Source of the DNA: Octopus sinensis
Lineage: Eukaryota
Length of the DNA stretch: 64,000 nucleotides
Assembly (NCBI RefSeq): GCF_006345805.1
Contig: NW_021831989.1
Coordinates: 558,001-622,000, forward strand
Direction: 5' to 3'
Numbering within the stretch: position 1 is the stretch's first letter; each line of letters begins with the position of its first letter. The notes beneath the pieces were generated by a model. The model had not been told where the DNA came from, did no database searches, and saw only the letters and a list, made by a program, of their open reading frames with translations. A program made the translations under genes and the position numbers. This document shows positions 2,391 to 35,427 of the stretch, one piece after another.

Positions 2391-3248
2391 CAGACGTCAC
2401 CAAACTACGGCCCGCGACAACATTTTATCCGGCCCGCGCACTATTTCGAGATATTCAATTAATACCTGAATAATTAACTTAAATAAAAACTTTAATTAAA
2501 AAATTAAACTATTTTGCAAGATTTAATTCGAAAAAAAACTTATCAGCATTAACGTTAAATTTTTCTTTGTTGCTATGTCTAATATGAAAAGAAAGGTTGA
2601 CCGCGAATGCCGTGTATTCAATAAATTATGGGAATTGAAGTATTTTTTTGCGAAAGATGAATTAAAGCAGAAAGCTTATTGTTTAATATGCCACGAACAT
2701 CTCTCTGTTATGAAGGAGTATAACATTCGACGTCATTATGAAACGAATCATGCTCCGATATATTCCAAGTACACTGGAAAGCTACGTGAGGATAAAGTTG
2801 AATCACTGAAACGCACTTTACAAATTCAACAAGGCCTTATAAAAAAAAATTTTGAAAATAATGAAAATGTAACAAGAGCTGGATACGAGATAACGAAAAT
2901 TATTTCACAACACGGGAAACCCTTTAGTGATGGGATGTATATCAAAAATTGCATTATTGAAGCAGTTAATTGTTTGTGCCCACTAAATTCTTCCTTATTT
3001 GATGGAATAAGTTTGTCGGCGAGTTCTGTATCACGGAGAACTGAAGAGCTTGGAAAAAATATATTTACAAATTGTGAAAAGACAAGTAATATGTTGTGGT
3101 ATTCTCTTGCATTGGATGAGTCAGTTGACATTTCGGGAACATCGCAACTTCTTATTTTTATTCGTGGAGTTGATGAGAATATTTCCATAACTGAAGAACT
3201 GGCATCTGTTTGTTCTATTCATGGAACAACCACTGGAAAAGATATTTT
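2391..3248 (+). mobile_element. Buster/SPIN (GTF2IRD2-like) hAT, 3'-truncated
   Basis: Left end CAGACGTCACCAAACTACGGCCCGCG. ORF 2575-3258 has CLICHEHLSVMKEYNIRRHYETNH, SLALDESVD, LLIFIRGV, TTGKDI. No right TIR. Confidence 0.85.
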
Positions 3249-3585
3249 AGGCCATTGATTTTGGCAAGTACCCGGGAGTATAGTTTGGCAGGCGTGTTCT
3301 TCAATGCACGGCCGTTGTCATTTAGCGTGTTTAGGGCAGTGCAAGGGTGGTAGAATTTTCGCGAAGCGAATAGGAATTGTGCTCCTCTCATGTTTAGATG
3401 TTCCTCTATCGGGAGGAGGTTGGTTTCACAGTGCAGATGGTCGATGGGTGTTGATTTGAGGCACCCGGATATGATGCGCATGGCTTGTTTTGAATTGATT
3501 GGAGAGCCAAAGAGGAGCTCATAGATAGACAGGGAGCCCACTCGGACTCGCGTAGCTTAGGACAGGGCGAATGTATTGTTTATAC

Positions 3586-5712
3586 CAGGCCTGGCCAACC
3601 CAAATCGCATCGCGGGCCACTTTGTCCAAATGAATCCTTTCCGCGGGCCGCATATACATGACATACTAAGGATAGATATCAAAAAACACAGATAAGATTT
3701 TATTTAGTAAAATAGCATTCAGTCCAATTATACGTATCAATGAGAAATCTGTTTTTCTTTATCTTCACTAATTTTTTCAAATCAACTTCACAATTACTAG
3801 TTGCACATCTTAATTGGTTTTCTAAGTTTTTATCTGTTAAAGAAGATCTATATCTACTTTTACTAAACTTTAATTTCGAAAAGAAGATTCACATACGAAG
3901 TAGATCCAAAGGGCTTACAACTCTTTGTGCAAAAATTCTTAAGTTGGGATATTTTTCTGCAGTCACATATTTGTTATAAAAGTCAATTTTGGATATAGTA
4001 GGATAAACAAGTCTTAGTTCACTGTTGCACTGTAGGTCAATTATTTCCGTCTGCAAAGTATTTGAAACAATAGAAACGTCAACATGAAATGGAGAAGAAA
4101 ATGTTTCAAACATTTTCTCATATTTTTTTAGTTCCGAGAATCGACTGTCAAATGCTGCAGCAAGATTTTTTATTTCATCAGCGTACTTGAAGAAATTTTT
4201 ACAATGGCTAATTTTAAATTGATTTAGCGTTGGAAAATGTTGATCATTTCCATTTCTTATTTGACATTCAAACAATGACAATTTCATTCGAAATGCTTTG
4301 ACTTGATGGCATGCATTAGTAATCAAATTATCCTGTCCTTGTAACTCCTTGTTTAATTGATTAATTTTTTCGGTTATATTACCAAAAGCACAGATCTAGC
4401 ATCCATTCTTCATCATTTAATTCAGTTAATGTCATTTTCTTATGCATCATAAAACTTTTGATTTCTTCTCTCAAGTCAAAAAAACGTTTTAAACATTTTC
4501 CGCGACTCAGCCATCTGACATTGGAAAAATACACAAGATCACCATAGTGAGAATATAACTCGTTCAATAATTTTTAAACTGGCGATGTTGAAGTGCATGA
4601 GAACGAATGAATTTATAGTTCTTACAACCACACTCATAACATGGTTCATAGACAACACTTGCGCGCACAAATTGGTGATGTATCAAGCAGTGTATTACAA
4701 ATAAATCATTTTTTATGCTTCTTGACTCCATCTCATCCATTATTAGCTTACAACTCCTTTATTTCTTCCAATCATAGCCGGCGCCCCATCTGTTGTCAAT
4801 CCAGCAAGGGTCTCTAAATTCGCTCCATTGTCGGATAAACATTTCATAACAGCTTGGAAAATATCTTCGCCCTTTGTAGTATCTTTCAAACTGACAAGGT
4901 TAAGCATTTCTTGTTTCACTTGAAAAGATTCGGTAACTCCACGAATATATACTACAAGTTGAGACGTGTCTGATATATCCGTGCATTCGTCAAAGGCCAA
5001 AGAATAACTTTTGAAATATTTTATTTGATCACGCAAAGTCACCACAATTTCATTTGAAATGTCATTAACCCTGCGACATATGGTTTGACGTGACAAGCTA
5101 ATGTTTTAAAACTTTTTAGTTTTATCTGGCAAAATGTCTTTCACGACAGCATCAAACACTCTTTTACGAATTCTCCATCCGAAAATGATTTCATTCTCTT
5201 TGAAATTATCATTGCAACAGAGTAGCTTGCTTTAACAGTATCAGAAGAAGAGTGTATCGATGAATTTAATAGTCTTTGCTGATTTCTCAATTCAGATTTA
5301 AGCGAATCCAGTTTCCTTGTTTTCAATTCCTTACTAAATTTCGCGTATTCGGAATGCTTTGTTTCATAATGTCTTCTTACATTGTACTCTTTCACCACCG
5401 ATACTTTCTCCTTGCAAATTAAACATGTTGGCTTGGAATTATGCATTATAAAAAAGTAATCTTCTTCCCAATGATTGCTGAATTGCCTGTTTTCTTCAAA
5501 AATTTTCCTTTCTTCATATTGATAACAGCTACAAAAATAGATAAACTTTAAAATTTATTAAACTTATAAAATTATCTTTATTTATTAAACTTAAGAAAAA
5601 TTTATCTTGAATGTATTTATAGGTTAACTACATACAAAATTTCTCTCGCGGGCCGCACCAAACTCCATCGCGGGCCGCATGCGGCCCGCGGGCCTTGGGT
5701 TGGCCAGCCCTG
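3586..5712 (-). mobile_element. Buster/SPIN hAT, near full length, frameshifted transposase
   Basis: TIRs CAGG(C/G)CTGGCCAACCC at both ends. TSD GTTTATAC left (3578-3585) versus GTTATAC right (one-base deletion). ORF pieces CLICKEKVSVVKEYNVRRHYETKH, LAFDECTD, TDGAPAM, VRWLSRG. Confidence 0.9.
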
Positions 5713-7651
5713 GTTATACACACGTTTGAGAAGTGGTTTCTGCGCACCGTGATGTGACCACTTATTGCTTCAGGATATTTGTACGCCTGTTAGCCTTGTC
5801 AGAGATCTTCGAGACATGTTGTTGAAGGACATCGGGTCGAAGGTTAGTCCGAGAACAGGGGGTGTTTTGATAGTGGGAGAACGAGCCAAAGAGAGATAGG
5901 TTGGGATGTATGTTTGATTGTCTTCTGTCGGAAGATAATAGGGTGACCGAGGACTTGGAGGGCGAGGCCTCGAGCCTGTTTTCTCTGAGCCAATTCTCAA
6001 CGGAGTGAGTTGTTGCTGAAGGTTGAAGGAGGCAGCTTGTAGTCTTCGTGTTTTGAGGCAATAATAATGTCGTCAGCGTAAGATAGTGTCAAGTTGTTAG
6101 GGTCGTTTGCCGGGAAGTCATGCAAGTAAAGATTGAACAGGGATGGAGACAGCACGGAGCCCTGCGGTACCCCCGTTGGAAGATAGCGTTGTTGGAACAA
6201 TGGTCCATGAGGGAGACGTAGCCCATGCGGCCCGATAAGAAGTTAGCAAGCCAGGATTTGTAGTTTGAGTTAGGCCGGTCGTGAGAATTTTCTTGGTGAG
6301 ACCGCAACGGGGGACGCTGTCAAAAGCTTTAGATATGTCGATGGAAGCTAGAACTGTTCGTTTAGGGGGCTCTTTCTCATTGAAGCCGTCCAGGACGAAC
6401 TGGGAAAGCGTTGTTAAGTGAGTGGTTGTTGAGTGCAGTGGTTTGAAGCCATGTGGGGTGGGATGTTGGTAAGTGCTTCGAGACTCGTGAAAGGATTAGT
6501 CTTTCGAGGATTTTAGATAGCGTGCACAAAAGAGAGATTGGGCGGTAGGAGCTTGGAATGCCAGCCGGTTTGTTCGGTTTGATTAACGGGATGATACGTG
6601 ATTTTTTCCAAAGAGATGGAATTTCGTTTTTTACAACGGAATTGTTGAAAATAGACACTATAGCGTTGATGGCGTTAGGGCCAAGTCTTTTAAGGTGGTG
6701 GATAGAAATGTTGTCAGGCCCCGTGGCGGGGGAATTCTTCGAGTTTTTTATACACTGCGAAACTTCGTCTGCAGTGAAAGGCGGTAAGGATTCCGTGCGA
6801 GGTAAGCTCCTCCGAGATTTGGTGACCTTCCGATCGTTTTTGTTTGACGTTTTGTGGCTTAAGGAGGCGTAGTAGTTCATGAGCGAGTTTGCCTCCTGAA
6901 CCGGATTCAGTGGGATGTTTGAGTTAGAAGTGGCAGATTCATGGGACTTGGGCTTTTCATAAATCAAATCATTCATGTCCTTCAGGGTCTTCCAAATTTT
7001 GGAGCTGTTAGATCTGTAGTCGATTGAGGTGATAAATTCGGTCCACTTAGAATCTGCGTGCAGGTTAATGGCAGCGGTGATTTGTTTGTTTAGGTTAGCC
7101 AATTCAATGGAGGACTCGGCAGAGTGCCTTGATATCTGTTTCAGCTTGTTGCGAGTCTTTATGAGGGATTTCACTTCGTGGCTGTAATTAGGGCGGAACT
7201 TTTCAATTTTTCCTTGGGGGATGAATTTTTTGGAGGTGGAAATGATGAGAGCATTAAGGTGATTGACTGCTGCATCAGTCGAGCGAAAGCTGTTGATGTT
7301 GAAATCGTTCAGAGAGTTTTCTAGGGCAAGGCGGTATTCGTCCCAGGAAGCTCTTTTGTAGTTAGTGTAACAGCGGCGTTGTAGGTCAATGTTAGATTTT
7401 AGAGCATTCTCGATTAGATTTTAAAGCATTAGCGAAGAAACGTGCACTATGAAATTATATTAATATTAAAAAAAAATGTTATTATAAATTTTTATTACTC
7501 AATAAAATAAAAGTTGACAATAAGAGTAAAAAAGTTGCTCAATAAAAAAGTTGACGGTAAGAGTAGAAAATTGATTTTGTTGCTTTTATAACTTTTTATA
7601 TATACATTTTTTATCGAAATAATTTGACTAATATCATTTTAACACTATAAT

Positions 7652-8884: not shown

Positions 8885-11800
8885 ATGTTTTTTTTTTTTT
8901 CGAATGGTTGTTGTTGCTGTTTCTATTTTTATTATTTTTGTTATCATTTCATTATTCTATCATCTATTAATCTATCCTGTCGTTATCATTCTATTAATCG
9001 TTCCTTTTCCTTTTTCTTTCGCTTTATTGCATCATTCTTTACATGGCAACTGTTCCTTGTAAATCATCCAATTCCCGCAAGAAGGGCCGCTTGTGCTCCT
9101 CTTGCGATCTGTACTTCCATCTATCCTGCGTCGGGCTCTCCAGGGCCAGCTCGGCCGTTATCCAATGCTGGAAGTGCCCGAGTTGCCTTGGTCTACCAAA
9201 CGCATATCCCCAATTCCCGGGAGCCATTTTACCCCTTCTCAATTCCTCAAATCCTTATCTGCTTTCCGAAGCGAATCATTCATCCCAGTAAGGATTCCAA
9301 AATCGGCCAGACCCACTGTGGCCAAGTCCCTCGCAGCCCTGATCGACCAGGCGCTGGCTTCCAGCGCTCCTGACCCTTGGTTCAAGCTGTTCTCTTTCTT
9401 CCCGTTTGCCTCAATTCTTCTCCCATGCGCTCATGCGCTGCTAATCACGTTTCTTCTGCCCAGCGGATCAAGGACCGTTGTACATCTTACGTCCACTCAG
9501 AGTTCAACTCTGATTGGCTGTCTGTCTCTCTTACGCCCCCTTGTAAGGAGGCACCCTCAAACGGCCCGGTCTCGCAGAATTGCGCTTTTCCCGGCAGCTC
9601 CGAAGCAAACTCCTCCAGGGCGATATCTCTGGAGCAGTGCGCGCAATTTCATCCAACTCCTCTGTGGCTCCTCGGTGTGATGCTGTCCTGAATCAACTCC
9701 GCAGCAAACACCCCCAAGCTCCCACCGACCTCCGTGCAACACCGACGTAGTTTCGGCTCCGTCCAACCCGATAACCTCGTCTGAGGTTCGGCCGCTCTCG
9801 GGTCTTTTGCGCCCAGTAGCAGCGGCGGGATAGACGGTGTAAAGCCCATCCACCTACGCGATCTCCTGAGCCCATTGACCCACGAATCCGGAAAAGACCT
9901 GCTATCTTCTGTCACTCGTCTTTGTTCGCACATTGTCTCGGGCGAGATTCCAACCGTCGCCAGAGATCTTCTTTTCTCTGCTGGCCTCATTGCCCTGTCG
10001 AAAGCCGATGGTGGCGTGAGGCCCATTGCGGTCGGTAACGTTTTCAGGAGACTCTCGGCCAAGATAATGTCCCGCAGGGTGGTTCCCCCCTGAGCCTGGA
10101 GTTTCTCCCTTTCCAGTACGGTGTCGGCGTCCAAGGTGCCTGCGAAATTCTCGCGCACGGCACTCGCCAACTTGTCCAGTCAAAGCCAGAGACTGCAAGT
10201 TCATCGTGAAGCTGGACGTCAGCAACGCATTCAACTGCGTCCGTCGGGACCATCTGCTCGAAGTGGTCTCGGCACGTTGCCCCGTTCTCTTCCCAATTGT
10301 AAAGCTGGCATACTCTGCCCCAAGCTGCCTTCTGATCCATGATCAGATCATCATGTCAGAATGCGGCATTCAGCAGGGTGACCCACTGGGCCCATTGCTG
10401 TTTGCCCCTCTGTTGACCACATTGCACGGAACCTTTCTTCCACTGTTAACTTCTGGTACCTGGACGACGTGACGATTGGTGGACCTACAGAGGTCGTTAT
10501 GGAAGACGTTAAGAGAATCACTTCCGGTTTCTCCAAGATCGGACTATCTCTTAACGGCGAAAAATGCGAACTCGTAAACATTCTCTTGCCCCCGCCGCTC
10601 TCCGCAACACATTCTCCTCTCTCAGCAGCCTGATCGTTGGTTAAGGCTAACGCCCACCAGCGATCTATTATCTTGGGCTCTCCAATTTCCGCTGTTGGCA
10701 TAGAAAATGCCTTATCGTGTAAATGGGACGAAATAAACTACTCACTGATCGGATCCGTGGGCTTGGCTCGCATCTTGCGTTTTTCTTGTTGAAGAACTTT
10801 CTTTTCGTCCCCAGACTGACCTATATTCTCCGTTCCTCCCCGTGTTTCGCTGCCACAGACTCATTATCCAGAATCGATAATCTTGTCCACCAATCGCTAA
10901 CATTCCACCTCAATTTGAGGTTCACTGGTGACGGTTTTACCCGTGCCAGTTTACCAACTCGCTTCGGGGGGATCGGGATCCGCCCTTGTGCGGACCTGGC
11001 CCTACCCTGCTATCTCTCATCCATGTCGGCTTCCAGGAATCCGTTTGCTCAGTTCTACTTCCCTCTCTCGAACTTAATGAGCTCTCGGAATTCTCATCTG
11101 CATGCCGTACGTGGTGCTCACTCGACCTTGATTTTCCCACGATCCCTTCAGTTCAAAGGGGCTGGGACGAAATTCTCTGCTTGAACACATTACGAAAACT
11201 TCGCTCCAAGTCGGACCAACTCCAGCTGGCCACCCTTAACTGCGCCTGTCAGCCGCACACGGGTGACTGCTCAAAGCTCTCCCCACTCCTAGTACGGGGT
11301 TACTACTGGACGACGAATCCTTGCGGATTGGGATCAGCTTACGATTGGGTTTGGACATCTGCCAGCCCCACCCTTGCCGGTGCGGGTCCTCAATTTCGTC
11401 AAACGGCTTGCACGCCTGTCGTGTAAGAAGAGTGCCGGGGGAGAATTCCCCGTCACACTCATCTGAATGACGTTGTGGAGGGCTCTAGAGTCGGCTGGTT
11501 TCCCTTCCACCCTAGAGCCAGTCGGCCTTTCCCGGAGCGACGGCAAGCGTCCCGACGGGATGACGACCTTTCCTTTTAGGGAAGGCAAGTCCCTGGTTTG
11601 GGATGCCACGTGTGTCGACTCTTTTTCGGCGACAATGCTTCCCAGGACTGTCGCAAACCCGGGTTCCGCCAGTGCGCTGGCTGAAGAGACAAAGATGACG
11701 AAATACCGGTGTATTTCGGACGCTTTTGAGTTTGCCCCCCTCGCCTTCGAAACCTCTGGAATCGTCGGAAAGGCTGCGACTCAACTCCTCACCGCCATTG

Positions 11801-12254: not shown

Positions 12255-14235
12255 AAAATAGTTGCTCTCAAAGTCCTCTTTCGTTCAAGACCGAATTTAT
12301 ACTCTTCCAGTTTTTCAAAAGTTTGGAAAAACAGTCGACTATCTGTCTGGGAGGGTGAATTTGACTCGAAATACAGTCCGACCCCAAAATGGGGCAGACC
12401 CCAGGGGGGGGCACCCTCGGATTTTGGGGCACCCCCGCAATTTGGGGCACTTTATTCCAAAAGTACATTTTGGCAGAAAAAAAATAAAAATCGATAAAAA
12501 ATTATGGAATTTTGGGGGGCACCATAAAATCATTTATAAGGAATTAAAAATAAATAAAATTATAATAAATTAATTATTTTTTGTTTTATTTTCAATTTAT
12601 ATTTTTATTGTTGTGGTTATGGATTACGAAACTAAATTGAAGATTGCTAAAGAAATTTTGAAGAAAAATTTATCTGAGAGGCAACTAATGAAAAAGTACA
12701 ACACAAGTAAAGGAACAATATCAAGAATAAAACGAAATATTGTACCTTTCTTGCAACACGGCAATACTATTTCTGAGGAATATGACACATTTAAAGCCGA
12801 TAAAGATAATTTGATGATCAAGTCTTTGAAAATTTCAAAGACTACGCGGTAGATAAAATTCCGATTTCAGGCCCTATTTTGAAAAAAATTGCCTTAGTTA
12901 CAGCTTCAAAAATTGGATTTACTTCTTTTAAAGCTTCCAATGGGTGGCTTGATAGATTTAAATTGCGGCATGAACTTCAATTCAAGTCAATATGTGGTGA
13001 AAAAGCTTCATGTGATTTATCTTATGTGAAAAATTATTTGAAAAATATGACCAGAAAGTATTAAAATATGGACCTGAGAATATATTTAATTGTGATGAAA
13101 CTGCGCTTTTTATAAAAAGAACTCCTCAAAAATCATTTGTTGAACAAGGCGAACCGTGTTTTGGTTATAAACAAGGGAAAAAAAGACTCACTGTTCTTCT
13201 ATGCTGCAGTTTAATCGGGGAAAAACTTAATCCATTGATTATTGGAAAATATAAAAAACCTCGGTGTCTAAAAATTTTGATGTTCAAGATTTTGGGTTAT
13301 TGTATTCATCTTCTCAAAATGCATGGATGACTGGAAAGACTTTTATGAGTTGGCTTACACTTATAAATGAATCGTTTTGCAAAAACAACAGAAAAATATT
13401 ATTAATACTTGACAATGCGGGATGCCATAAAACTGCCGAATGTTCGAACATCGAATTTTTATTTTGCCGAAAAATACAACGCCCTATTTACAACCTTTGG
13501 ATATGGGAATAATCAAGATTTTTAAAGATTATTATTCCCTTTCTTAATGGAATTTTTATGTTTTCAAGATTTCGAAAACGATTTTACACATTCTATTGGT
13601 AAATTAAATTGCGTCAGGTTATGATGCTAATTTCAAAAGGATGGGAGAAAATAGATGCTAAAAGTATTGTTAATTGTTGGAAGAAAATCGACAGGAACCG
13701 TGATTCTTATGCAACAAAAAACTGTCTAACAGATGAACATTTAGATCAAGTTGTTAACGAAACATTGATGGAGAATGCGAAGACATGAACAATAATGTTT
13801 ATGATACATATTCAGAAACCGAAAATAGTGAAAATGTCGTAGCAAAAACAAAAGATCTGCTAACAATTTAGAAGAAAAAATTTCTAATGTTGCACCAAGT
13901 ATGCTCCGAGATTTTTTTGATTTTCGGCTGAAATTGACGAACAATATCAGACAAAACTCTACAAATAAAAAGAAAATAACTGAATATTTTAGTAAAAATG
14001 TTTTTTGATGTTTATTAATGGTTTAATTTTTAAAAAAATAACAAACCCCTGTTTTTGGGGCACCCCCGCATTTTGGGGCACTTGGTGCCCCATTTGGGGG
14101 TCGGACTGTATGCAGTTGTCGGCGGGTTATTTGCAAGATAAGAATATTTTTGCATACACGGGATCACTATGCGTCCATTGCAAAAAAGCAGACAGTGATT
14201 ATGTCCGAAGACATAATAAAGTGTTAAAGTATATC
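12255..14235 (+). pseudogene. Fragment of an R4/NeSL-like RLE retrotransposon, split by the pogo element (pieces ~12255-12373 and 14109-14235)
   Basis: Joining across the TA site gives ...LTRNMQLSAGYLQDKNIF..CVHCKKADSDYVRRHNKVLKYI, a CCHC-like plus RHN motif that precedes RLE domains. Confidence 0.5.
12374..14108 (+). mobile_element. pogo/Tigger DNA transposon with both TIRs, defective CENP-B-like transposase
   Basis: TIRs CAGTCCGACCCC(A/C)AAATGGGGCA, flanked by TA on both sides. Motifs ASNGWLDRFK, FNCDETAL, LILDNAGCH, LQPLDMGII, with frameshifts. Confidence 0.92.
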
Positions 14236-16530: not shown

Positions 16531-17130
16531 GAAGCCTTAGCGGATAAAATTATTATTGAAAATATTAAGTTAAAATTATTTAAATTGACTAAAAGTCTGG
16601 TAGAAAGCGTAATTTCTTGTGGGTTCACTTCGATAAATATATTATTCCGGGAAAGACTGGCAATCGAGCCAGATGCCGTAATTGCGGGAAGGAGGTACAT
16701 GGTCTCGTATCCCGGATGAGGCAGCATTATTTGTTATACCAAACTAATTTTGATGTCTCTGAAAATTATTTGTTATACCGAACAATTGAATGTGGTTTAA
16801 TCAGCGAATTGCCTTAGAGGATTAGGGACCAATCATTAATTAATTTTGTTACTGTGATGACGTTATTGAATAAAAAATTGATGTAACTATTCTAAAAACA
16901 CTTCTTTTGCTGCTTTCTTTGAGTATTATGCTGAACATTATTAATATGCTTCCCCAGCTCTGATTAATTTAAGCAATACATGTTCGCTCTAAACTTATTG
17001 AGTTAATTATCACTTTGTGGGAGTCGAACTCTTACCTTCTAAAACAATTCCACTTTTCAAAAAAAATTTTGGTGCAGCCGCCTAACAGGTGGAATAGAAC
17101 GAATTTTTTCGACTTTTGGATTCTTACATT

Positions 17131-17765
17131 ATTATTATTATTATTTAAGCCAAACAAAATCACCGTCTTAACCATTAACTAACACGTTCAGGTGATTCCG
17201 ACACTTCTCAACAGTCGAGCCATCTTTTCACGATGTTCCTACCGTGACCCCACACACTTTCTGTATGTACGGTGAATGGTTTGTGGTCCATTTCCACGAT
17301 CCCCCCCATTTGCCTCTACGAGAGACTCTAGTGTTCTATGGACAATTTCCCTATCGGTATGGTCCTTCAGCAGGTTGATAGATCTTTCTTGAATTTTTTC
17401 GATTTTTAGCCGGTTCGTTGCCGCTAGGTTACAGCCCCAAGCAGCACATGCATAGCCTATTGTTGGCTCGATATACTGCTTGTAAAGGGTCTCTACCCCT
17501 GGCGGATAAGTTCTCCCACAGTTCCAAGGAAAGTATCAAACGTTACTCCCAATATTCTGTGTTTTCTTTTGTGGTATTGGAATTCCGTTCAACGTGACAT
17601 CAATAGTTTTCGTCCCCATCTTCTATTTTTTTTTCGTGAATAGAGTGACTGCTGACTTTTCGGAACATGCATGTAGTCTGTTTTCATATAGCCATCCATA
17701 TAGTCGTCCAGTATTTCTTTTGTAGTCTTTCCTTCGCGTATTCGACATTTACATCCCTAGATGCG
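17131..17765 (-). mobile_element. 5'-truncated Jockey/I-type LINE with (TAA)n tail
   Basis: Minus-strand KQYIEPTIGYACAAWG...KIEKIQERSINL. (ATT)n at 17128-17145. Second copy at 27768-28065. Confidence 0.75.
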
Positions 17766-17787
17766 ACATTAGATTACGAAATGGTTT

Positions 17788-18946
17788 ATTATTATTATTA
17801 TTGCAAAATACGTAGATATATATAGTTATAATTTTACTCGTGCAGCATTAAAAACAATCCTTTGAACCAGCCTCCTCCAACCTCCTCTGTCGTGAGCGAG
17901 TTTCCTCAGCTCGTCCAGATCCTCACCACTCCTTAGCCTTTCTTCACACATTTCAGGTCTCCGTCAAGTGTTTCCGGCAGCGTAACACGTGGACGTCCAC
18001 GGAAGCTCGATCCCTCTTTCAGGAAGTAGCCCTCCATTGCTATGTTAGCTGGGGCAAGCATGTCCATTCGTAGAATATGGCCAAATAACCTCCACCGCAT
18101 ATTGACGATTTCCACACTCAGAGGGCCAGTTCTGCATCTATTGTATAGCGATTCCTGGTTGATTCTTATAGGCCAGTTCAATCCCAGTAGGGATCTAAGT
18201 TGCCTGCGGTGAAAAGAATCGAGTCCACGTTGTTCAGTACTAGACATTCCCCAGGTCGCCGAATTATATGTCAGGATTGGTTTGACAAAGGCTTCATACA
18301 TCCTCAGACGAAGTGACGTACAGAGTCGTCGTTTGCCGATCCACTCTTTCTTTATCTTGTTCATCGTGGCCCAAGCGAGAGCCTTTCTTCTGACAATATC
18401 ATGGCCGTCCCCAAGTAGAGAACCGAGTTTGTTCGTTTTGCGCCAGGCTTCACTTGAGCTGCTCTCCATCCTCATGATTTCAACGATGTCGGTTTTTTCC
18501 AACGTTCATTTTAAGGAACCATCTGTTCAGCTCAGCAGGTGCCACTTCAAGGAGTCGAAGTAAGGCCGATTTGTCGTCTGACACGAAGTCGACGTCATCT
18601 GCATATACAATTTCGACGATATTGCCAGCATAGAATTTTCGAAGGTCTCGTAGTGCCGTCTCCAGATAGATCACGAATAGCAACGGCGAGAGGGCGTCTC
18701 CCTGAGGGGTACCGACGTTGCACGTGAATTCACGGGAAAACGCCGTGCCGACCCGCACCTTGAGCTTTGTGTTCGATAGTAGTACTCTTATCATATTGAT
18801 AGAGTCAGGGTCCAGGAATTGTTCCAGTATTTTGAGGAGTAGACCACGGCGTACCGTGTCAAGGGCCTAGACAGGTCTATTCCCAGGACTGTTGTTGCAC
18901 TTTTGTATTCTGGATACGTCCCTAACCCTAACCCTAACCCTAACCC
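17788..18946 (-). mobile_element. 5'-truncated RTE/RTEX-like LINE with (TAA)n tail
   Basis: GIDLSR..DTVRR, TPQGDALSP, YADD, LYEAFVKPILTY-like segment, RWRLFGHILR, GRPRVT. TSD TACGAAAT(A)GGTTT at 17775-17787 and 18948-18961. Confidence 0.9.
18920..18946 (-). repeat. Interstitial telomeric repeat, (TTAGGG)4.5
   Basis: CCCTAACCCTAACCCTAACCCTAACCC read directly on the + strand. Confidence 0.97.
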
Positions 18947-19146
18947 GTACGAAATAGGTTTGGAATTGAAAAGACTGCCAAACTTGTCTTTATTTACAAG
19001 CTTTTAAATAAATACGATTTCTATTGTTTTCATTTTTATTTATTTTGAATAATCTTTTAAACCAGCTTAGTCCAGCCCTCAGTGCATGATCCCAAAAAGG
19101 CCTGACAAGCCGATGCATGCCAGGCCCGATAGGCACTTTCCATGCC

Positions 19147-21677
19147 AATCTAATTTGTTGGTGTTAAAAACAGGCGTTTCCTTTTTATGCCCGCAACCAC
19201 TTAGGGTCGCAATATATTTTTCTTTGACAGTTTTGAAACGAAAAATTTTTATTTTAAAAGAGGCGATTAGTAAAGGGTAGATAAAGACTTCGGCATTCCT
19301 GCTTTTTCAGTCCCGCACACACGCTCACCTCTCAGCCTCAAACTAAGATTTACCTCCTTACCTGCAATCCGGCTAGCCCACCCAGACATTATCTTCTCTA
19401 AGACCTCAGGGAGGCCTTTGAGGGACAATTCCTGGGTGTCCGAGAGCTCCACTCACCATCCTAAGCCATGGGCTAGCCGGATGGCTCGTCTTCTGACTTT
19501 CTTGAGCGCGTCAACGTACTTCTCCCGGTCCTCGCAGAAGTGCCAGGCATGAACGCCATATGTCAACACGGGTAACACCATGGCGTTAAACACGCGTAGC
19601 CAAGCACCTCTCCGCAGCCGGAAAGCACGCAACGCGCCTAATCGCTGCATTGCAGGCATTTTCGTACGTGCAATGTGATCATCCAACTTACCGGTCGGGT
19701 TGAAGAAACGAAAAATTTGGATATTTCCCAACGAAACGAAAAATTTTATTTCAAAATAAAAGGCTGTTAGTAGAGGGTATAATTCAAGAGCACCCCCAAA
19801 TAAGTCATTCGATCAACTGCAGCAATTGCTGACTCGTTCAGCAATAACCTAGGGACGTAATTGATGTAACCCCTCGTCCTTTTACAGACTTTGAGAACAC
19901 TGCACTTGTCCGCACGCATCTTTAGACCTCTACTCCCACACCAGTTTATAAGTCCATTCACAGCAACCTGTAGCCTACGACACGAACACTCAGGTTTCAT
20001 CGAGTGATCCCAGAGGATGATGTCGTCTGCATAAATCACCATTTCAGTACGAGCATTGACTGGGATGGGCGCAGAAGCCATAAAGACATTAAAAAGCGTG
20101 TGACTCACCAAAGAGCCCTGAGGGACCCCGCGAAGGACTGTTCTGACTTTAGAAAAGACCCCCTGATTCCGCACGACCTGTCCGCGAGATCCAGACCCGC
20201 CGCAGTGTTCTTACTTCGGGAGATCGCTGCCAGAATCTCCGCTTCGGAAATATCGCCTGCATCGTTTTTTGATATGCCCAGCTGGCAGCGCTTGTCCCAC
20301 GTCAATATCTGCTGGACAGTATCAAAGGACGATGTCTCCACGAACTGGCTTCCGTCAGTTCCAGAGATGTCATCGAGGTGGGTTGAAAATATTTCAGCCA
20401 CCTCAACCGGGTCCGAAACAAAGGTTCCATCAGAGCGTTTAAGGCGCACTGAATTTGCTACCCCCTCTCCCCGACAAGCTCTTCAACTGTTTCCAGAAGT
20501 CTGGGAAGCGGGCGTCTAGGCGTCTGCAGGCTCGCTCCCATCGTGAACTTTCGAGTTCGCGGATTTCTCTTCGAATCTCCCTCTGAAGTCGGCTAATCCA
20601 GCCACCAAACCAAACACGGTTTTCCTCGTAAACGCATTTGTCCCGTAGTCTGGATAGCCGGCGCTTAAACCTAATTTTATTTAAGACTTGGTACGGGAGC
20701 GTGGAATGTGACTTACCCTGCACTGAGTTCTGTTTGAAATTATCTCGCATATAATCAGTCAGGTCAACATTGATTCCATTTCCAGGTTGTCCCAAGAACC
20801 CGACCGGAGGTCGAAGTATCCCGGAACCCTTTGAGGGACTGGCTCGCGGAGTTCGTGCAATAGAGGCAGATGGTAGCTTCCAATATCGGGCAATAAAATT
20901 GTTTTACTAACCAAATTTAGCATTCCAGGACTGACCAAAGCAAGCCCTAGCCAGTCTCGTCCGCCTCGCGAATCGATGTGGTTTGGCTCACTTGAAGACC
21001 GGACTTCCAGCCCGAGGTCTTCAACCAGCGTTTTCAGAGCCAAACCATGCGCGTTGGTTACCCTGAAACCTAGCTCTATGTGCTTGGCATTCAGGTCTCC
21101 AACAACCATCGCCTTCGGATGCTTTCCAAAGAACTCCCACACGTGCCAGGAACACGCCGTAAAGTTCTTGAATACATCGCCCCTAGGTAAAATGTAAAGT
21201 TACCTATACGAGGCTAGTTCCCGTGCCACATATTGACCCCTGTTTCCAGGGTATGCGACAACAGTTGTAGCCATCAACTACGTACGGACCCCCCTTTACC
21301 TTCGTTTCGTTGACCACCAGAATGTCCGCACTCGTGGTGGCCAACATGCTCTGAACGTGTCTCCTTTACCGGACAAGGAGCGCTCGTTCACCGATATAAT
21401 GATGACCATCATATCGGCTCCTCGCCAAGGATTTTCTTGGCCTCAGCCATTTTGCAATGTAGCATATCAGCTATACTGCACTTCGTCGCCCTACATAATT
21501 TAAGTAGGAGCACACACAACCGCACCGCAGGACTAATAGTGTCCTGGGCGCTCGCCAGAAGGGGAGTGCGGTGGCATTTCCACGTATGGAAGACGCCTTT
21601 TCCCCTAGATTAATTTAATTTGTTTGTATTAAAAGCAGGCGTTTCTTTTTTATGCCCACAACCACTTAGGGTCGCAA
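19147..21677 (-). mobile_element. Jockey-like LINE (APE + internally deleted RT), bounded by ~66-bp direct repeats
   Basis: APE motifs VNETK, VGDLNAKH, DIGSYH. RT motifs VPQGS, YADD, YLG. Direct repeats at 19147-19212 and 21612-21677 (60/66 identical). Confidence 0.8.
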
Positions 21678-27767: not shown

Positions 27768-28065
27768 ATTATTATTATTATTATTTAAGCCAAAAACAGA
27801 ATCACCGTCTTAACCATTAACTAACGTGTTCAGGTGATTCCGACACTTCTCAACAGTCTAGCCATCTTTTCACGATGTTCAGACCGTGACCCCACACACT
27901 TTCTGTATGTACGGTGAAATGCTTGTGGTCCATCTCCACGATCCCTCCCACTTGCCTCTACAAGAGACTCCAGTGTTCGATGGACAATTTTCATGTCGGT
28001 ATGGTCCTTCAGTATGTTTATGGATTTTTCTTGGATTTTCTCGATTTTTAGTTGGTTCGTTGCAG
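27768..28065 (-). mobile_element. 3' fragment of the LINE family at 17131-17765, (TAA)n tail
   Basis: Closely similar to 17128-17420 (attattattatttaagccaaa..accgtcttaaccattaactaac..ttcaggtgattccgacacttctcaacag). Confidence 0.85.
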
Positions 28066-32829: not shown

Positions 32830-35427
32830 TCATGTTTGACGACAATTCTCCAAGACCATCCGGATCGTGGGCACAGAGGATTCTTGTGAGTCTTTTAACC
32901 TTCCGTCAAGTTGTACTCCGTAAGCCAATTTCATAGCGAAACGTCTTGTCTTTTCCAACTGTTCGATCAGGTAGTCACTCTCCTCCGTACCGTACCAGCC
33001 CTCGTAGCCATATGTGAGGACTGGCTGCACACACGTTTTGTATACGTAGATGTACGTTTCCGGATCCAGATGGAACCTGGATAAGCTTTTGAGGATCCTC
33101 ACACTCCTCTTTCTCTGATTTGCTATATGCTCTACGTACGAGCCACGACAGTTGATGGTTGCTCCCAGGTAAGAAAGATTTTTGCTTTTCGAGAGATCCA
33201 TCACATAGCTACTCATCGCATATGCACACGACTCCGCATAGCGACTCCCTCTCCGCAACCATGAAATGGTGCTCTTCTCCGGTGCTAGGGTCAAACCCTT
33301 CTCTATAGTCCACATCTTTAGCGTTGCAATGTATGATTTCAGTCGTCTCCAAGACTGCGATATCCTTTTCGAGGTATCCATGACCAGGATATCGTCAGCA
33401 TAGATAACGAGCTTGCCAGTACGTGTCAACGGCAGAGGAATGTCCGCCAAGAAGAGGTTGAATAGAAGTGGACTCAAGATAGATCCCTGCGGGACTCCCC
33501 TTCTAAGTTCCACACACCCTGATAGGCGGTTTCCACAGCGGACAAATGATTGTCTTCCTGACAAGAAGCTCTCCAGCCATCGATAGGTCTTTATCCCGGC
33601 TCCGATGTCATGGATTCTGGAGAGTAGGCCCAGGTGCCACACGCTATCGAAGGCTTTGGCCAGATCCAGACACACCACAGTTAGCCATGCTTCATTTCTG
33701 TCAGCACGGGATAATTGGTGCTCTAACTCCCTGAGGCAGTCCCCTGTGGATCTTCCTCCACGAAATCCCCATTGTTCGGGTAAAAGCAAATTTTGTGATT
33801 CTATATGACCAGAGAGTCTGTTAAAGACAATCTTTTCCATTGTCTTAGAGAAAGCACAAATGAGGCTAATTGGCCGGTAGTTCTGTGCCAGCAGTGTCGA
33901 TTTACCAGATTTTTGAATCATTCGAACAATCGTATGCTTCCACGCCGATGGAAGGTGTCCGAACGTCCAGCTGGCGTGAAACAACATAGTCAATGCTCGT
34001 ATCAAGATTTCAGGGGCCTTCTTTAACAACTTCGGATGGATGTAGTCGAAGCCAGGCGCCTTGTTCTTCAACCCAGCAATTGCCCTTTCAACCTCTTCCT
34101 GTGTTATCGCCCCACATAATGGTCCCTCCGATAATTGCGAAGAGCCAAGCTTCTTCACAATTCGGTCATAAGTCCCTCGTGGAACGGTAGATTCGACCTC
34201 TTGAACCTGACTGAGTTGGTTCCTGAGTACTTCCGGGATACGATCAGAGGAGATATATTTCCCGCCTGGTTCTTTTAGTGAAATTTCAAATCCTTTGGCA
34301 TCATTTCTGGTAAGGCGTTGATATGCTTTCCAGAAATTAGGGTTTCGCTTATCCAGTTTTCTGCATTCAGACCTCCATTTACTTTCGACCTCAGTCTTGG
34401 CCATTTTTGCAATAGTAGATTTTATCTTGTCGATCTCCAATTTCAGGCGGCATTTGATTGACTCAACCCGACATCTTCTCCTGCGATTTTCCAGGGTACC
34501 TTTCGTTCTGATCAGAGTGACAGGTTTCGAATTCATCCGCTTTTGCGTTCCTTTGGGTTTCCATACATTTTTTAATGCATAAACATCCAGGAATTTTATG
34601 ATTGACGATCTAAGGTGATCATCGAGATTGTCAATATCATCTCTGCTTCTCAGAGGCTGGGACACGACATTTCGAAGAGAATCCCGCATATATGATTCGA
34701 ATAAACTCCAGTTCATGTTCACGAGGTTGTAACCAATGAACAAGTCCTCCGTAACATTCATAGTCATCTTTATCAACATTGTTTGCGGCACGTGGTCAGA
34801 GCCAATGTCCGCTTCCAACCTCCGTATGTAACATAAAGGACTAATTGATGCCGAGCATAGAAAGAGACCCAAGCGATCAGCCCTGCCTCTGTCTGCATAA
34901 TGATTCAGTTCTTCCGATGTAAAGACCGAAAAACCCAAGCTACTGGCCAAGTCCTCAAGGACAGTTCCATCCATATTCGTAGTTTCACATCCATAACTCA
35001 CATTTTTGGCATTAAGATCTCCTGCTAGGATTGACAGGCAATTTTCCTCAAAGAACGTCCCAATAACGTTTGAATAGCGCCTTAGCGACTTTGAGTACAT
35101 TCCCCCGACGGTTAGCCAGCCAGCAGTCGTGTGCAGCTCGAGCACAATAAGTTCACAGAGTGACTCCTCCACAATTCTGATGTTTCTTACCTTAAGGTTC
35201 GCCCTGTAGTAGACTGAGGTTCCTGTCCCCGCCACTGAGTTTATTTTCCATGGTATATTAATAGACTTATAGCCTTCGAATTCCACCCTCGTAGCTTCCT
35301 TCAGCTTAGTCTCATTGATAATCAATATGTGAGACTTCGCTGTGGCCAGCAGGAGCCTCAGCTCCGATGCCCGTCTCGCAAGCGAGCGGGCATTTAGAAT
35401 TGTCAGAGCAAGGAATCCTTCCGACAT
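32830..35427 (-). CDS. LINE ORF2, uninterrupted 865 aa (AP endonuclease + reverse transcriptase)
   Basis: LNARSL, NETK, GDLNAK, GSDH; YRPISL, LDLAKAFDSV, PQGSILSP, YADD, YLG. Confidence 0.95.
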   Translation of the reverse strand: MSEGFLALTILNARSLARRASELRLLLATAKSHILIINETKLKEATRVEFEGYKSINIPWKINSVAGTGTSVYYRANLKVRNIRIVEESLCELIVLELHTTAGWLTVGGMYSKSLRRYSNVIGTFFEENCLSILAGDLNAKNVSYGCETTNMDGTVLEDLASSLGFSVFTSEELNHYADRGRADRLGLFLCSASISPLCYIRRLEADIGSDHVPQTMLIKMTMNVTEDLFIGYNLVNMNWSLFESYMRDSLRNVVSQPLRSRDDIDNLDDHLRSSIIKFLDVYALKNVWKPKGTQKRMNSKPVTLIRTKGTLENRRRRCRVESIKCRLKLEIDKIKSTIAKMAKTEVESKWRSECRKLDKRNPNFWKAYQRLTRNDAKGFEISLKEPGGKYISSDRIPEVLRNQLSQVQEVESTVPRGTYDRIVKKLGSSQLSEGPLCGAITQEEVERAIAGLKNKAPGFDYIHPKLLKKAPEILIRALTMLFHASWTFGHLPSAWKHTIVRMIQKSGKSTLLAQNYRPISLICAFSKTMEKIVFNRLSGHIESQNLLLPEQWGFRGGRSTGDCLRELEHQLSRADRNEAWLTVVCLDLAKAFDSVWHLGLLSRIHDIGAGIKTYRWLESFLSGRQSFVRCGNRLSGCVELRRGVPQGSILSPLLFNLFLADIPLPLTRTGKLVIYADDILVMDTSKRISQSWRRLKSYIATLKMWTIEKGLTLAPEKSTISWLRRGSRYAESCAYAMSSYVMDLSKSKNLSYLGATINCRGSYVEHIANQRKRSVRILKSLSRFHLDPETYIYVYKTCVQPVLTYGYEGWYGTEESDYLIEQLEKTRRFAMKLAYGVQLDGRLKDSQESSVPTIRMVLENCRQT

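Follow-up and report, generated by a model that had tools for sequence, protein, structure and literature searches.

Attachment of the 5′ end is the least understood step in the retrotransposition of elements that lack long terminal repeats (non-LTR elements), and a recognisable foreign sequence at a 5′ junction reveals the 3′ ends and the polymerases that reached the intermediate. At L1 and zebrafish long interspersed nuclear element (LINE) junctions, filler or extra nucleotides occur at the 5′ ends of truncated insertions. Template switching by the LINE reverse transcriptase (RT) is said to yield U6-L1 chimeric retrocopies, as Buzdin reportedly described in 2002, and Morrish is said to have described endonuclease-independent LINE-1 insertion at telomeres in 2007. 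For the short interstitial telomeric sequences (ITSs) found at repaired double-strand breaks, the preferred origin is elongation of a 3′ end by telomerase (Nergadze et al. 2004/2007, PMC2246262; Santagostino et al. 2020, PMC7215372). Here we describe a 64-kb stretch of Octopus sinensis DNA (contig NW_021831989.1, positions 558,001 to 622,000; the window) in which a 5′-truncated, apparently RTE-like LINE is preceded, inside its own target-site duplication (TSD), by a short perfect tract of telomeric repeats. A literature search returned no earlier case of a LINE whose 5′ junction has telomeric repeats enclosed by the TSD.

The sense of the element corresponds to the minus strand of the window, and its parts were read directly and extracted by coordinate. 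In the order in which they occur along the element's sense strand, these are:

upstream of 18961, minus strand: 5′ flank, ...TTTTCAATTCC
18961-18948, minus strand: upstream (5′-side) TSD copy, AAACCTATTTCGTA, 14 nt, equivalent to the top-strand 3′ overhang of the target-primed reverse transcription (TPRT) intermediate
18947, minus strand: extra base C, which the target lacks and which does not fit the telomeric register
18946-18920, minus strand, same sense as the element: telomeric tract GGG(TTAGGG)4, GGGTTAGGGTTAGGGTTAGGGTTAGGG, 27 nt of perfect G-strand
18919 to the stop codon TAA at 17828-17826, minus strand: 5′-truncated RT remnant of a putatively RTE-like non-LTR element, beginning ACGTATCCAGAATAC... 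/ ACGTATCCAGAATACAAAAGT...
17825-17803, minus strand: 3′ untranslated region (UTR), CTATATATATCTACGTATTTTGC, 23 nt
17802-17788, minus strand: tail, an (AAT)5 simple repeat
17787-17775, minus strand: downstream (3′-side) TSD copy, AAACCATTTCGTA, 13 nt
below 17775, minus strand: 3′ flank, ATCTAATG...

The two TSD copies differ in length, the downstream copy being shorter by one T, and a 13/14-nt direct repeat with one indel that abuts both ends of an element exactly has a chance expectation of ~4e-7. Both the 5′ end and the 3′ tail are flanked, as in non-LTR insertions made by TPRT, and the 14-nt TSD together with the intact tail identifies an ordinary endonuclease-dependent TPRT insertion. The base that follows the downstream TSD copy is A, not C, and the target continued from ...CGTA directly into ATCT, with neither the C nor the G-rich repeats. 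Relative to the rebuilt target, the tract is an insertion of exact telomeric hexamers (4.5 perfect units; Tandem Repeats Finder gives 4.5 copies of a 6-nt unit with a 100% match), and its junction with the element reads GGG followed by ACGTATCC. On both strands of the window it is the sole telomeric run that reaches 10 nt, and none of 100 shuffles equalled it; shorter telomeric runs of 8–9 nt occur five times, compared with ~7 expected from the shuffles. An earlier note on this DNA had proposed the same coordinates and insertion anatomy, and all of the parts lie where it placed them.

Comparison with related elements shows where the tract meets the LINE. In an alignment with seven longer relatives the RT is continuous through the homologous position, including the motifs upstream of GIDxSxAFD, and there is no repeat-encoded insert. 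The codons of the relatives preceding and running through this point specify RWR[SC]A-T[HC]QR[FY][KE]S..., and three Octopus sinensis copies read ...GCN ACN (C/T)(A/G)C CAA AGA T(A/T)C (A/G)A(A/G) AG(T/C)... (A-T-[HC]-Q-R-[FY]-[KE]-S) at the homologous point; in the window copy the tract is followed by ACG TAT CCA GAA TAC AAA AGT (T-Y-P-E-Y-K-S). Homology therefore starts at the ACG codon that touches the tract, and the 5′ truncation of the element, which falls within the RT domain, is genuine. The earlier note had assigned the repeats to neither the target nor the open reading frame (ORF), and this is borne out by their position relative to the TSD and by the continuous RT of the relatives. 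Two simpler assignments were considered and rejected: the tract is not part of the target, since it is located within the TSD, and it is not part of the ORF, as the relatives read through with ordinary RT codons.

A further expectation of the earlier note, that other copies of the element lack the repeats, holds for the copies covered here, which are relatives and not members of the same family. The five Octopus sinensis loci that hold the nearest relatives have no telomeric repeat at or near their RTE copies; this mini-census spans ~100 kb and is too small for any inference. One degenerate interstitial array of CCCTAA/CCCTAC units, 145 bp long and set in AT-rich sequence, is present at positions 13353-13497 of one of these loci, L003 (VCDQ01000828.1), ~2.5 kb from its RTE copy and with no RT-coding ORF listed beside it.

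The RT remnant is readily recognised as being of non-LTR type, with a match to Pfam RVT_1 (E=1.3e-17, profile positions 73-190) and 136 database relatives, several of which are named 'endonuclease-reverse transcriptase'; relatives are found at 45-57% amino-acid identity. Those annotated in Octopus sinensis are the nearest, at 54-57%, and copies from sponge, sea slug, and oomycete come next; all of the relatives retrieved are RT-only fragments. The 3′ UTR is very short (23 nt) and ends in the simple repeat (AAT)5 rather than poly(A), as in the RTE clade, and this tail type and the source names of the relatives suggest that the element is RTE-like. The remnant begins within the RT domain, 13 codons upstream of GIDLSRA(L)DTV. 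The earlier note had the ORF cut just before GIDLSR; this needs correcting, as 12 further homologous codons (TYPEYKSATTVL) separate the tract from that motif. Three frameshifts are present (at ~18866, ~18495, and ~17939), two of them within homopolymer runs, and there is no in-frame stop codon over ~345 codons; this indel-only damage and the 1-nt difference between the TSD copies may in part reflect assembly error. Neither blastn nor tblastn finds further copies of the family in the 64-kb window, and exact 22-23-mers of the element were not found in metagenome contigs or prokaryote genome contigs. Look-ups of the exact products of three ORFs of the window in public collections were likewise without success.

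We consider it probable that the tract was built in while the 5′ junction was being formed, as part of the same integration event. That telomerase specifically made it is a tentative proposal, to which we give rather less than an even chance, and we favour it over template switching by the LINE RT, which we regard as somewhat unlikely; the two routes give the same product, and a single locus does not separate them. According to the telomerase proposal, one TPRT event would have placed a 5′-truncated RTE-like LINE into a decayed hAT-like stretch, with the tract and the C joined in at the 5′ junction. As the locus itself displays, a nick in the bottom strand at the TSD's left edge primed cDNA synthesis on the (AAU)n tail, and a top-strand nick 14 nt away at the right edge, marked by the TSD, freed a single-stranded 3′ overhang, ...AAACCTATTTCGTA-3′OH. 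Telomerase may then have lengthened this overhang by ~4.5 repeats, in which case the C could either be a copy of the base that directly adjoins the template of the telomerase RNA or have been added adventitiously. The LINE RT, halted at ...ACGUAUCC, would make its usual jump to the 3′ end of the lengthened overhang and copy the repeats and the TSD, and the insertion would be completed by second-strand synthesis and ligation.

In favour of the telomerase proposal, the G-strand is continuous, in the TPRT model, with the sole free top-strand 3′ end of the intermediate, 5′-...AAACCTATTTCGTA-3′OH. Telomerase requires a substrate of just this type, a 3′ overhang that is single-stranded (here 14 nt long), and the route adds one step to normal TPRT. 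The earlier note had argued from polarity, and its logic is sound in that the G-strand extends exactly from the top-strand 3′OH end. Its further step to telomerase stands only in part: the polarity fits, but a template switch of the RT onto telomeric RNA or single-stranded DNA predicts the same structure, so polarity is not specific to telomerase.

Several observations weigh against a role for telomerase. At the junction of flank and tract, ..CGTA-C-GGGTTAGGG, there are 0 nt in register (2 nt, TA, if the C is ignored), and the locus thus lacks the in-register bases by which telomerase-made ITSs are recognised. In-register bases, one or more, are found at 77.5% of the horse ITSs ascribed to telomerase, compared with 25% or less by chance, so that a locus with none falls in the 22.5% minority class of horse loci versus the 75% expected without telomerase (PMC7215372). 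This feature favours template switching about threefold. The penalty is softened by rodent loci, at which a few telomerase-RNA-derived bases, copied from beside the template, precede the repeats (PMC2246262); the out-of-register C weighs mildly against direct telomerase priming. Polarity is weak evidence: had telomerase worked on the 3′ end of the cDNA instead, the polarity would have been reversed and the tract would equally have been ascribed to telomerase, whereas template switching predicts the observed polarity only; the same structure and polarity are expected from an RT template switch. No fragment of telomerase RNA is present, and the case consists of a single locus; an Rfam scan of the window was without a match. 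Primate and rodent TERC-ITS loci also show no association with transposons (PMC8537989).

The sequence CGTA provides a further complication, in that it brackets the 28-nt filler, at 18944-18951 (the TSD end, ..CGTA) and at 18915-18919 (the element start, A-CGTA-TCC), an arrangement with a chance of ~2%. In ordinary truncated LINE insertions such microhomology is used in the join and is present once. The pair here looks like unused microhomology, which is predicted by neither telomerase extension nor template switching and sits uncomfortably with the former, and it may be a coincidence.

Template switching, the somewhat unlikely alternative, would have the LINE RT leave its own RNA at ...ACGUAUCC and jump onto G-rich telomeric RNA, either a fragment of telomeric repeat-containing RNA (TERRA) or a ~24-nt telomeric small RNA (tel-sRNA), or onto G-strand single-stranded DNA. 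After copying ~27 nt it would extend the cDNA by a single untemplated G (read as C in the sense strand) and jump to the top-strand overhang, generating a U6-L1-type chimera whose 5′ partner is telomeric. The layout is that which defines the U6-L1 chimeras, namely a 5′ partner in LINE sense, joined to a 5′-truncated LINE, with one TSD around both. Telomeric RNA being mainly UUAGGG, the observed polarity is the only one predicted, and the extra C is positioned as the untemplated nucleotide of the last jump, with no register needed. Telomeric repeat RNAs exist in other taxa, with tel-sRNAs of ~24 nt that are G-strand-biased (PMC3434024), and the 27–28 nt of the tract is near that size (PMC3434024). 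However, telomeric RNA is presumed in this organism, two jumps are needed versus one in the telomerase model, and a jump to TERRA should often run into subtelomeric sequence, of which there is none here. Telomeric RNAs are moreover far rarer than the small nuclear RNAs (snRNAs) usual in chimeras, and our literature search found no TERRA-LINE or tel-sRNA-LINE chimera. A variant in which the LINE enzyme copied the telomerase RNA template itself is rejected, as it would yield ~1.5 repeats in the opposite sense.

The remaining explanations place the telomeric repeats before or after the integration, or outside biology altogether. The inserted RNA could already have included the repeats, either because a truncated or internally deleted master copy lay beside telomeric repeats (a 5′ transduction) or because the 5′ terminus of the family has telomere-like repeats and an internal deletion followed. 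Truncated RTE-type copies and SINE-like (short interspersed nuclear element) elements with the same (AAT)n tail do appear to be mobilised in this genome, but trans-mobilisation would be needed of a copy without an endonuclease and half of the RT, and in relatives at 45-65% identity the homologous position is occupied by plain coding sequence, with no telomeric repeat in the vicinity of the copies. The element is also not telomere-targeted, the target being an ordinary AT-rich site with a 14-nt TSD, and we regard an origin in the source copy as improbable. Two separate events are a good deal less credible still. A LINE insertion with an earlier junction of ...TTTCGTATCC... would have been followed by a staggered double-strand break exactly at the 5′ junction, and its repair would have inserted the telomeric repeats and duplicated 4 nt (CGTA). 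Such a history would explain CGTA on either side of the insert (chance ~2%), and short target duplications and 1-nt fillers do attend some telomeric insertions at breaks (PMC2246262, PMC7215372), with 4.5% of the horse loci having a duplication, or 7.6% including those that combine duplication with deletion and addition (PMC7215372). Yet the break must strike one base pair of 64,000 in a window with a single tract, and the A before the right-hand CGTA restores a Thr codon (ACN) that is conserved in 3/3 octopus relatives, such that ACGTA looks native to the element and not like duplicated target plus filler. An assembly or sequencing artefact, with unrelated reads joined through the telomeric repeat, is the least credible of all: two of the three frameshifts in the remnant are in homopolymer runs and hint at indel noise, but a chimeric join would recreate neither the 13/14-nt TSD at both ends nor an open frame over the rebuilt empty site.

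The earlier note took the target to be a hAT transposon and regarded the resumption of its reading frame as confirming the target. Joining the flanks through the 14-nt TSD copy does give one open frame of 49 codons, ..SFLRVFDIYIPRCDIRL joined to RNRFGIEKTAKLVFIYKLLN.. (..SFLRVFDIYIPRCDIRL joined to RNRFGIEKTAKLVFIYKLLNKYDF..), which is open only with the 14-nt copy and which by eye resembles a hAT C-terminus. A zf-BED domain (E=9.5e-5) is encoded ~1 kb upstream at 16617-16817 on the plus strand. Across the rebuilt site, however, there is no Pfam match to Dimer_Tnp_hAT at E<=1, a homologue search with the joined target flank returned nothing, and a tblastn comparison with an octopus hAT-like locus did not confirm the hAT identity of the target. 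No uninterrupted paralogue of the target that crosses the junction is present within the window. The reopening of the frame thus stands and the hAT identity lacks Pfam or homologue support; the frame argument is a plausible supplement and not a confirmation, and the case for the insertion rests on the TSD and the exact element termini. Elsewhere in the window, an ORF at 2575-3258 on the plus strand encodes a C2H2 zinc finger of the Spin-doc type (E=2e-11), and this ORF and the zf-BED finger are probably transposase-derived remnants.

Other mobile elements are present in the window. A SINE-like repeat of ~295 bp occurs twice (17128-17421 and 27768-28063, minus sense), its two copies being 90% identical and ending in (AAT)6; it may be a non-autonomous element that shares the machinery of the RTE-like element. 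A search for TSDs around the other (AAT)n tails in the window gave one weak candidate, consistent with chance, and the ~295-bp repeat is without clear TSDs. A second decayed non-LTR element lies 0.5 kb from the insertion at 19453-21142 on the minus strand, with matches to RVT_1 (E=2.6e-13, 19767-20174) and Exo_endo_phos_2 (E=1.1e-7, 20759-21142). Also on the minus strand, an intact 865-aa ORF at 32830-35427 contains both Exo_endo_phos_2 and RVT_1 domains; its best database relative is 26% identical, which points to a poorly sampled lineage, and the ORF may represent an active LINE from a lineage not yet sampled. Two segments of the window that are unrelated to each other, 17788-18919 and 9965-10507, match a single Octopus sinensis locus (L001, at 9875-11009 and 5677-6215) with 66-71% nucleotide identity, the RT being 57% identical in amino acids. 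Resemblance of this order (about 70% at the nucleotide level for the RTE-like copy and one other repeat) would fit a cephalopod-related or cephalopod-associated genome, or an exchange of transposable elements with cephalopods by horizontal transfer, and is proof of neither; the intact LINE is without a close relative.

The origin of the tract matters beyond this insertion. If telomerase made it, TPRT intermediates would be, like double-strand breaks, substrates for de novo telomere-repeat addition, and short ITSs beside LINE 5′ ends could be a genome-wide read-out of that activity; if instead the LINE enzyme copied telomeric RNA, this would be the first telomeric partner among template-switch chimeras. 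One locus proves neither route, and either way the census question is testable in any well-assembled genome. The earlier note had gone further, invoking the somatic DNA remodelling of dicyemids and a promiscuous telomerase acting generally in this genome, for which we find no support: there is one tract in 64 kb, and the locus is part of the assembled sequence. It could be proposed that in this lineage telomerase regularly competes for the top-strand 3′ overhangs of LINE intermediates, and that LINE integration is a source of interstitial telomeric repeats that has gone unrecognised and has a fixed polarity. A tract at the 5′ junction of a LINE would then be a record of telomerase acting on ends other than telomeres, as would be expected where an animal's chromosomes undergo fragmentation and healing, but we consider so broad a generalisation very doubtful.

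In comparison with the known systems, the junction has most in common with two of them. It resembles the break-repair ITSs in having exact (TTAGGG)n of few units as a sudden internal insertion, and 1-nt fillers or short duplications are possible in both; it departs from them in that a LINE intermediate with its staggered cut takes the place of the 'break', the partner in the join is a LINE cDNA and not the other chromosome end, and the repeats start out of register. With the U6-L1 chimeras it shares a foreign, sense-oriented sequence at the 5′ end of a truncated LINE, one TSD, and the LINE's own 3′ tail, whereas the partner here would be telomeric repeat RNA or single-stranded DNA and not an abundant snRNA, with only 27 nt copied. 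The fillers at L1 and zebrafish LINE junctions likewise consist of bases from neither target nor element between the upstream TSD and the truncated 5′ end, and the CGTA microhomology between the target end and the truncation point is a further likeness; in contrast, the filler here is 28 nt long with a recognisable, specific source, and the microhomology is unused and present on both sides.

Retroelements joined to telomeres form the remaining comparison. In endonuclease-independent L1 insertions and the endonuclease-lacking Penelope-like elements (PLEs), too, telomeric repeats are physically linked to a retroelement, and telomerase-like reverse transcription interacts with that of LINEs. In those systems the G-strand 3′ end primes the cDNA, and the repeats either abut the element 3′ end or, at a healed 5′ end, show CCCTAA on the sense strand, without a TSD. 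In the window element the TSD measures 14 nt, the (AAT)n tail is intact and meets the target, and the 5′ end has sense-strand TTAGGG; its repeats are 5′ only, in G-strand sense, and within a non-telomeric TSD, which separates it from the telomere-targeted or telomere-attached class (TRAS/SART, endonuclease-independent L1, and PLEs). A telomere-attached or telomere-healed element is ruled out by the opposite polarity expected of it (sense-strand CCCTAA preceding the 5′ end, without a TSD) and by the TSD that is present. The junction is real, cleanly delimited, and unusual, and is best regarded as a variant either of telomeric insertion at DNA ends or of the template-switch chimeras.

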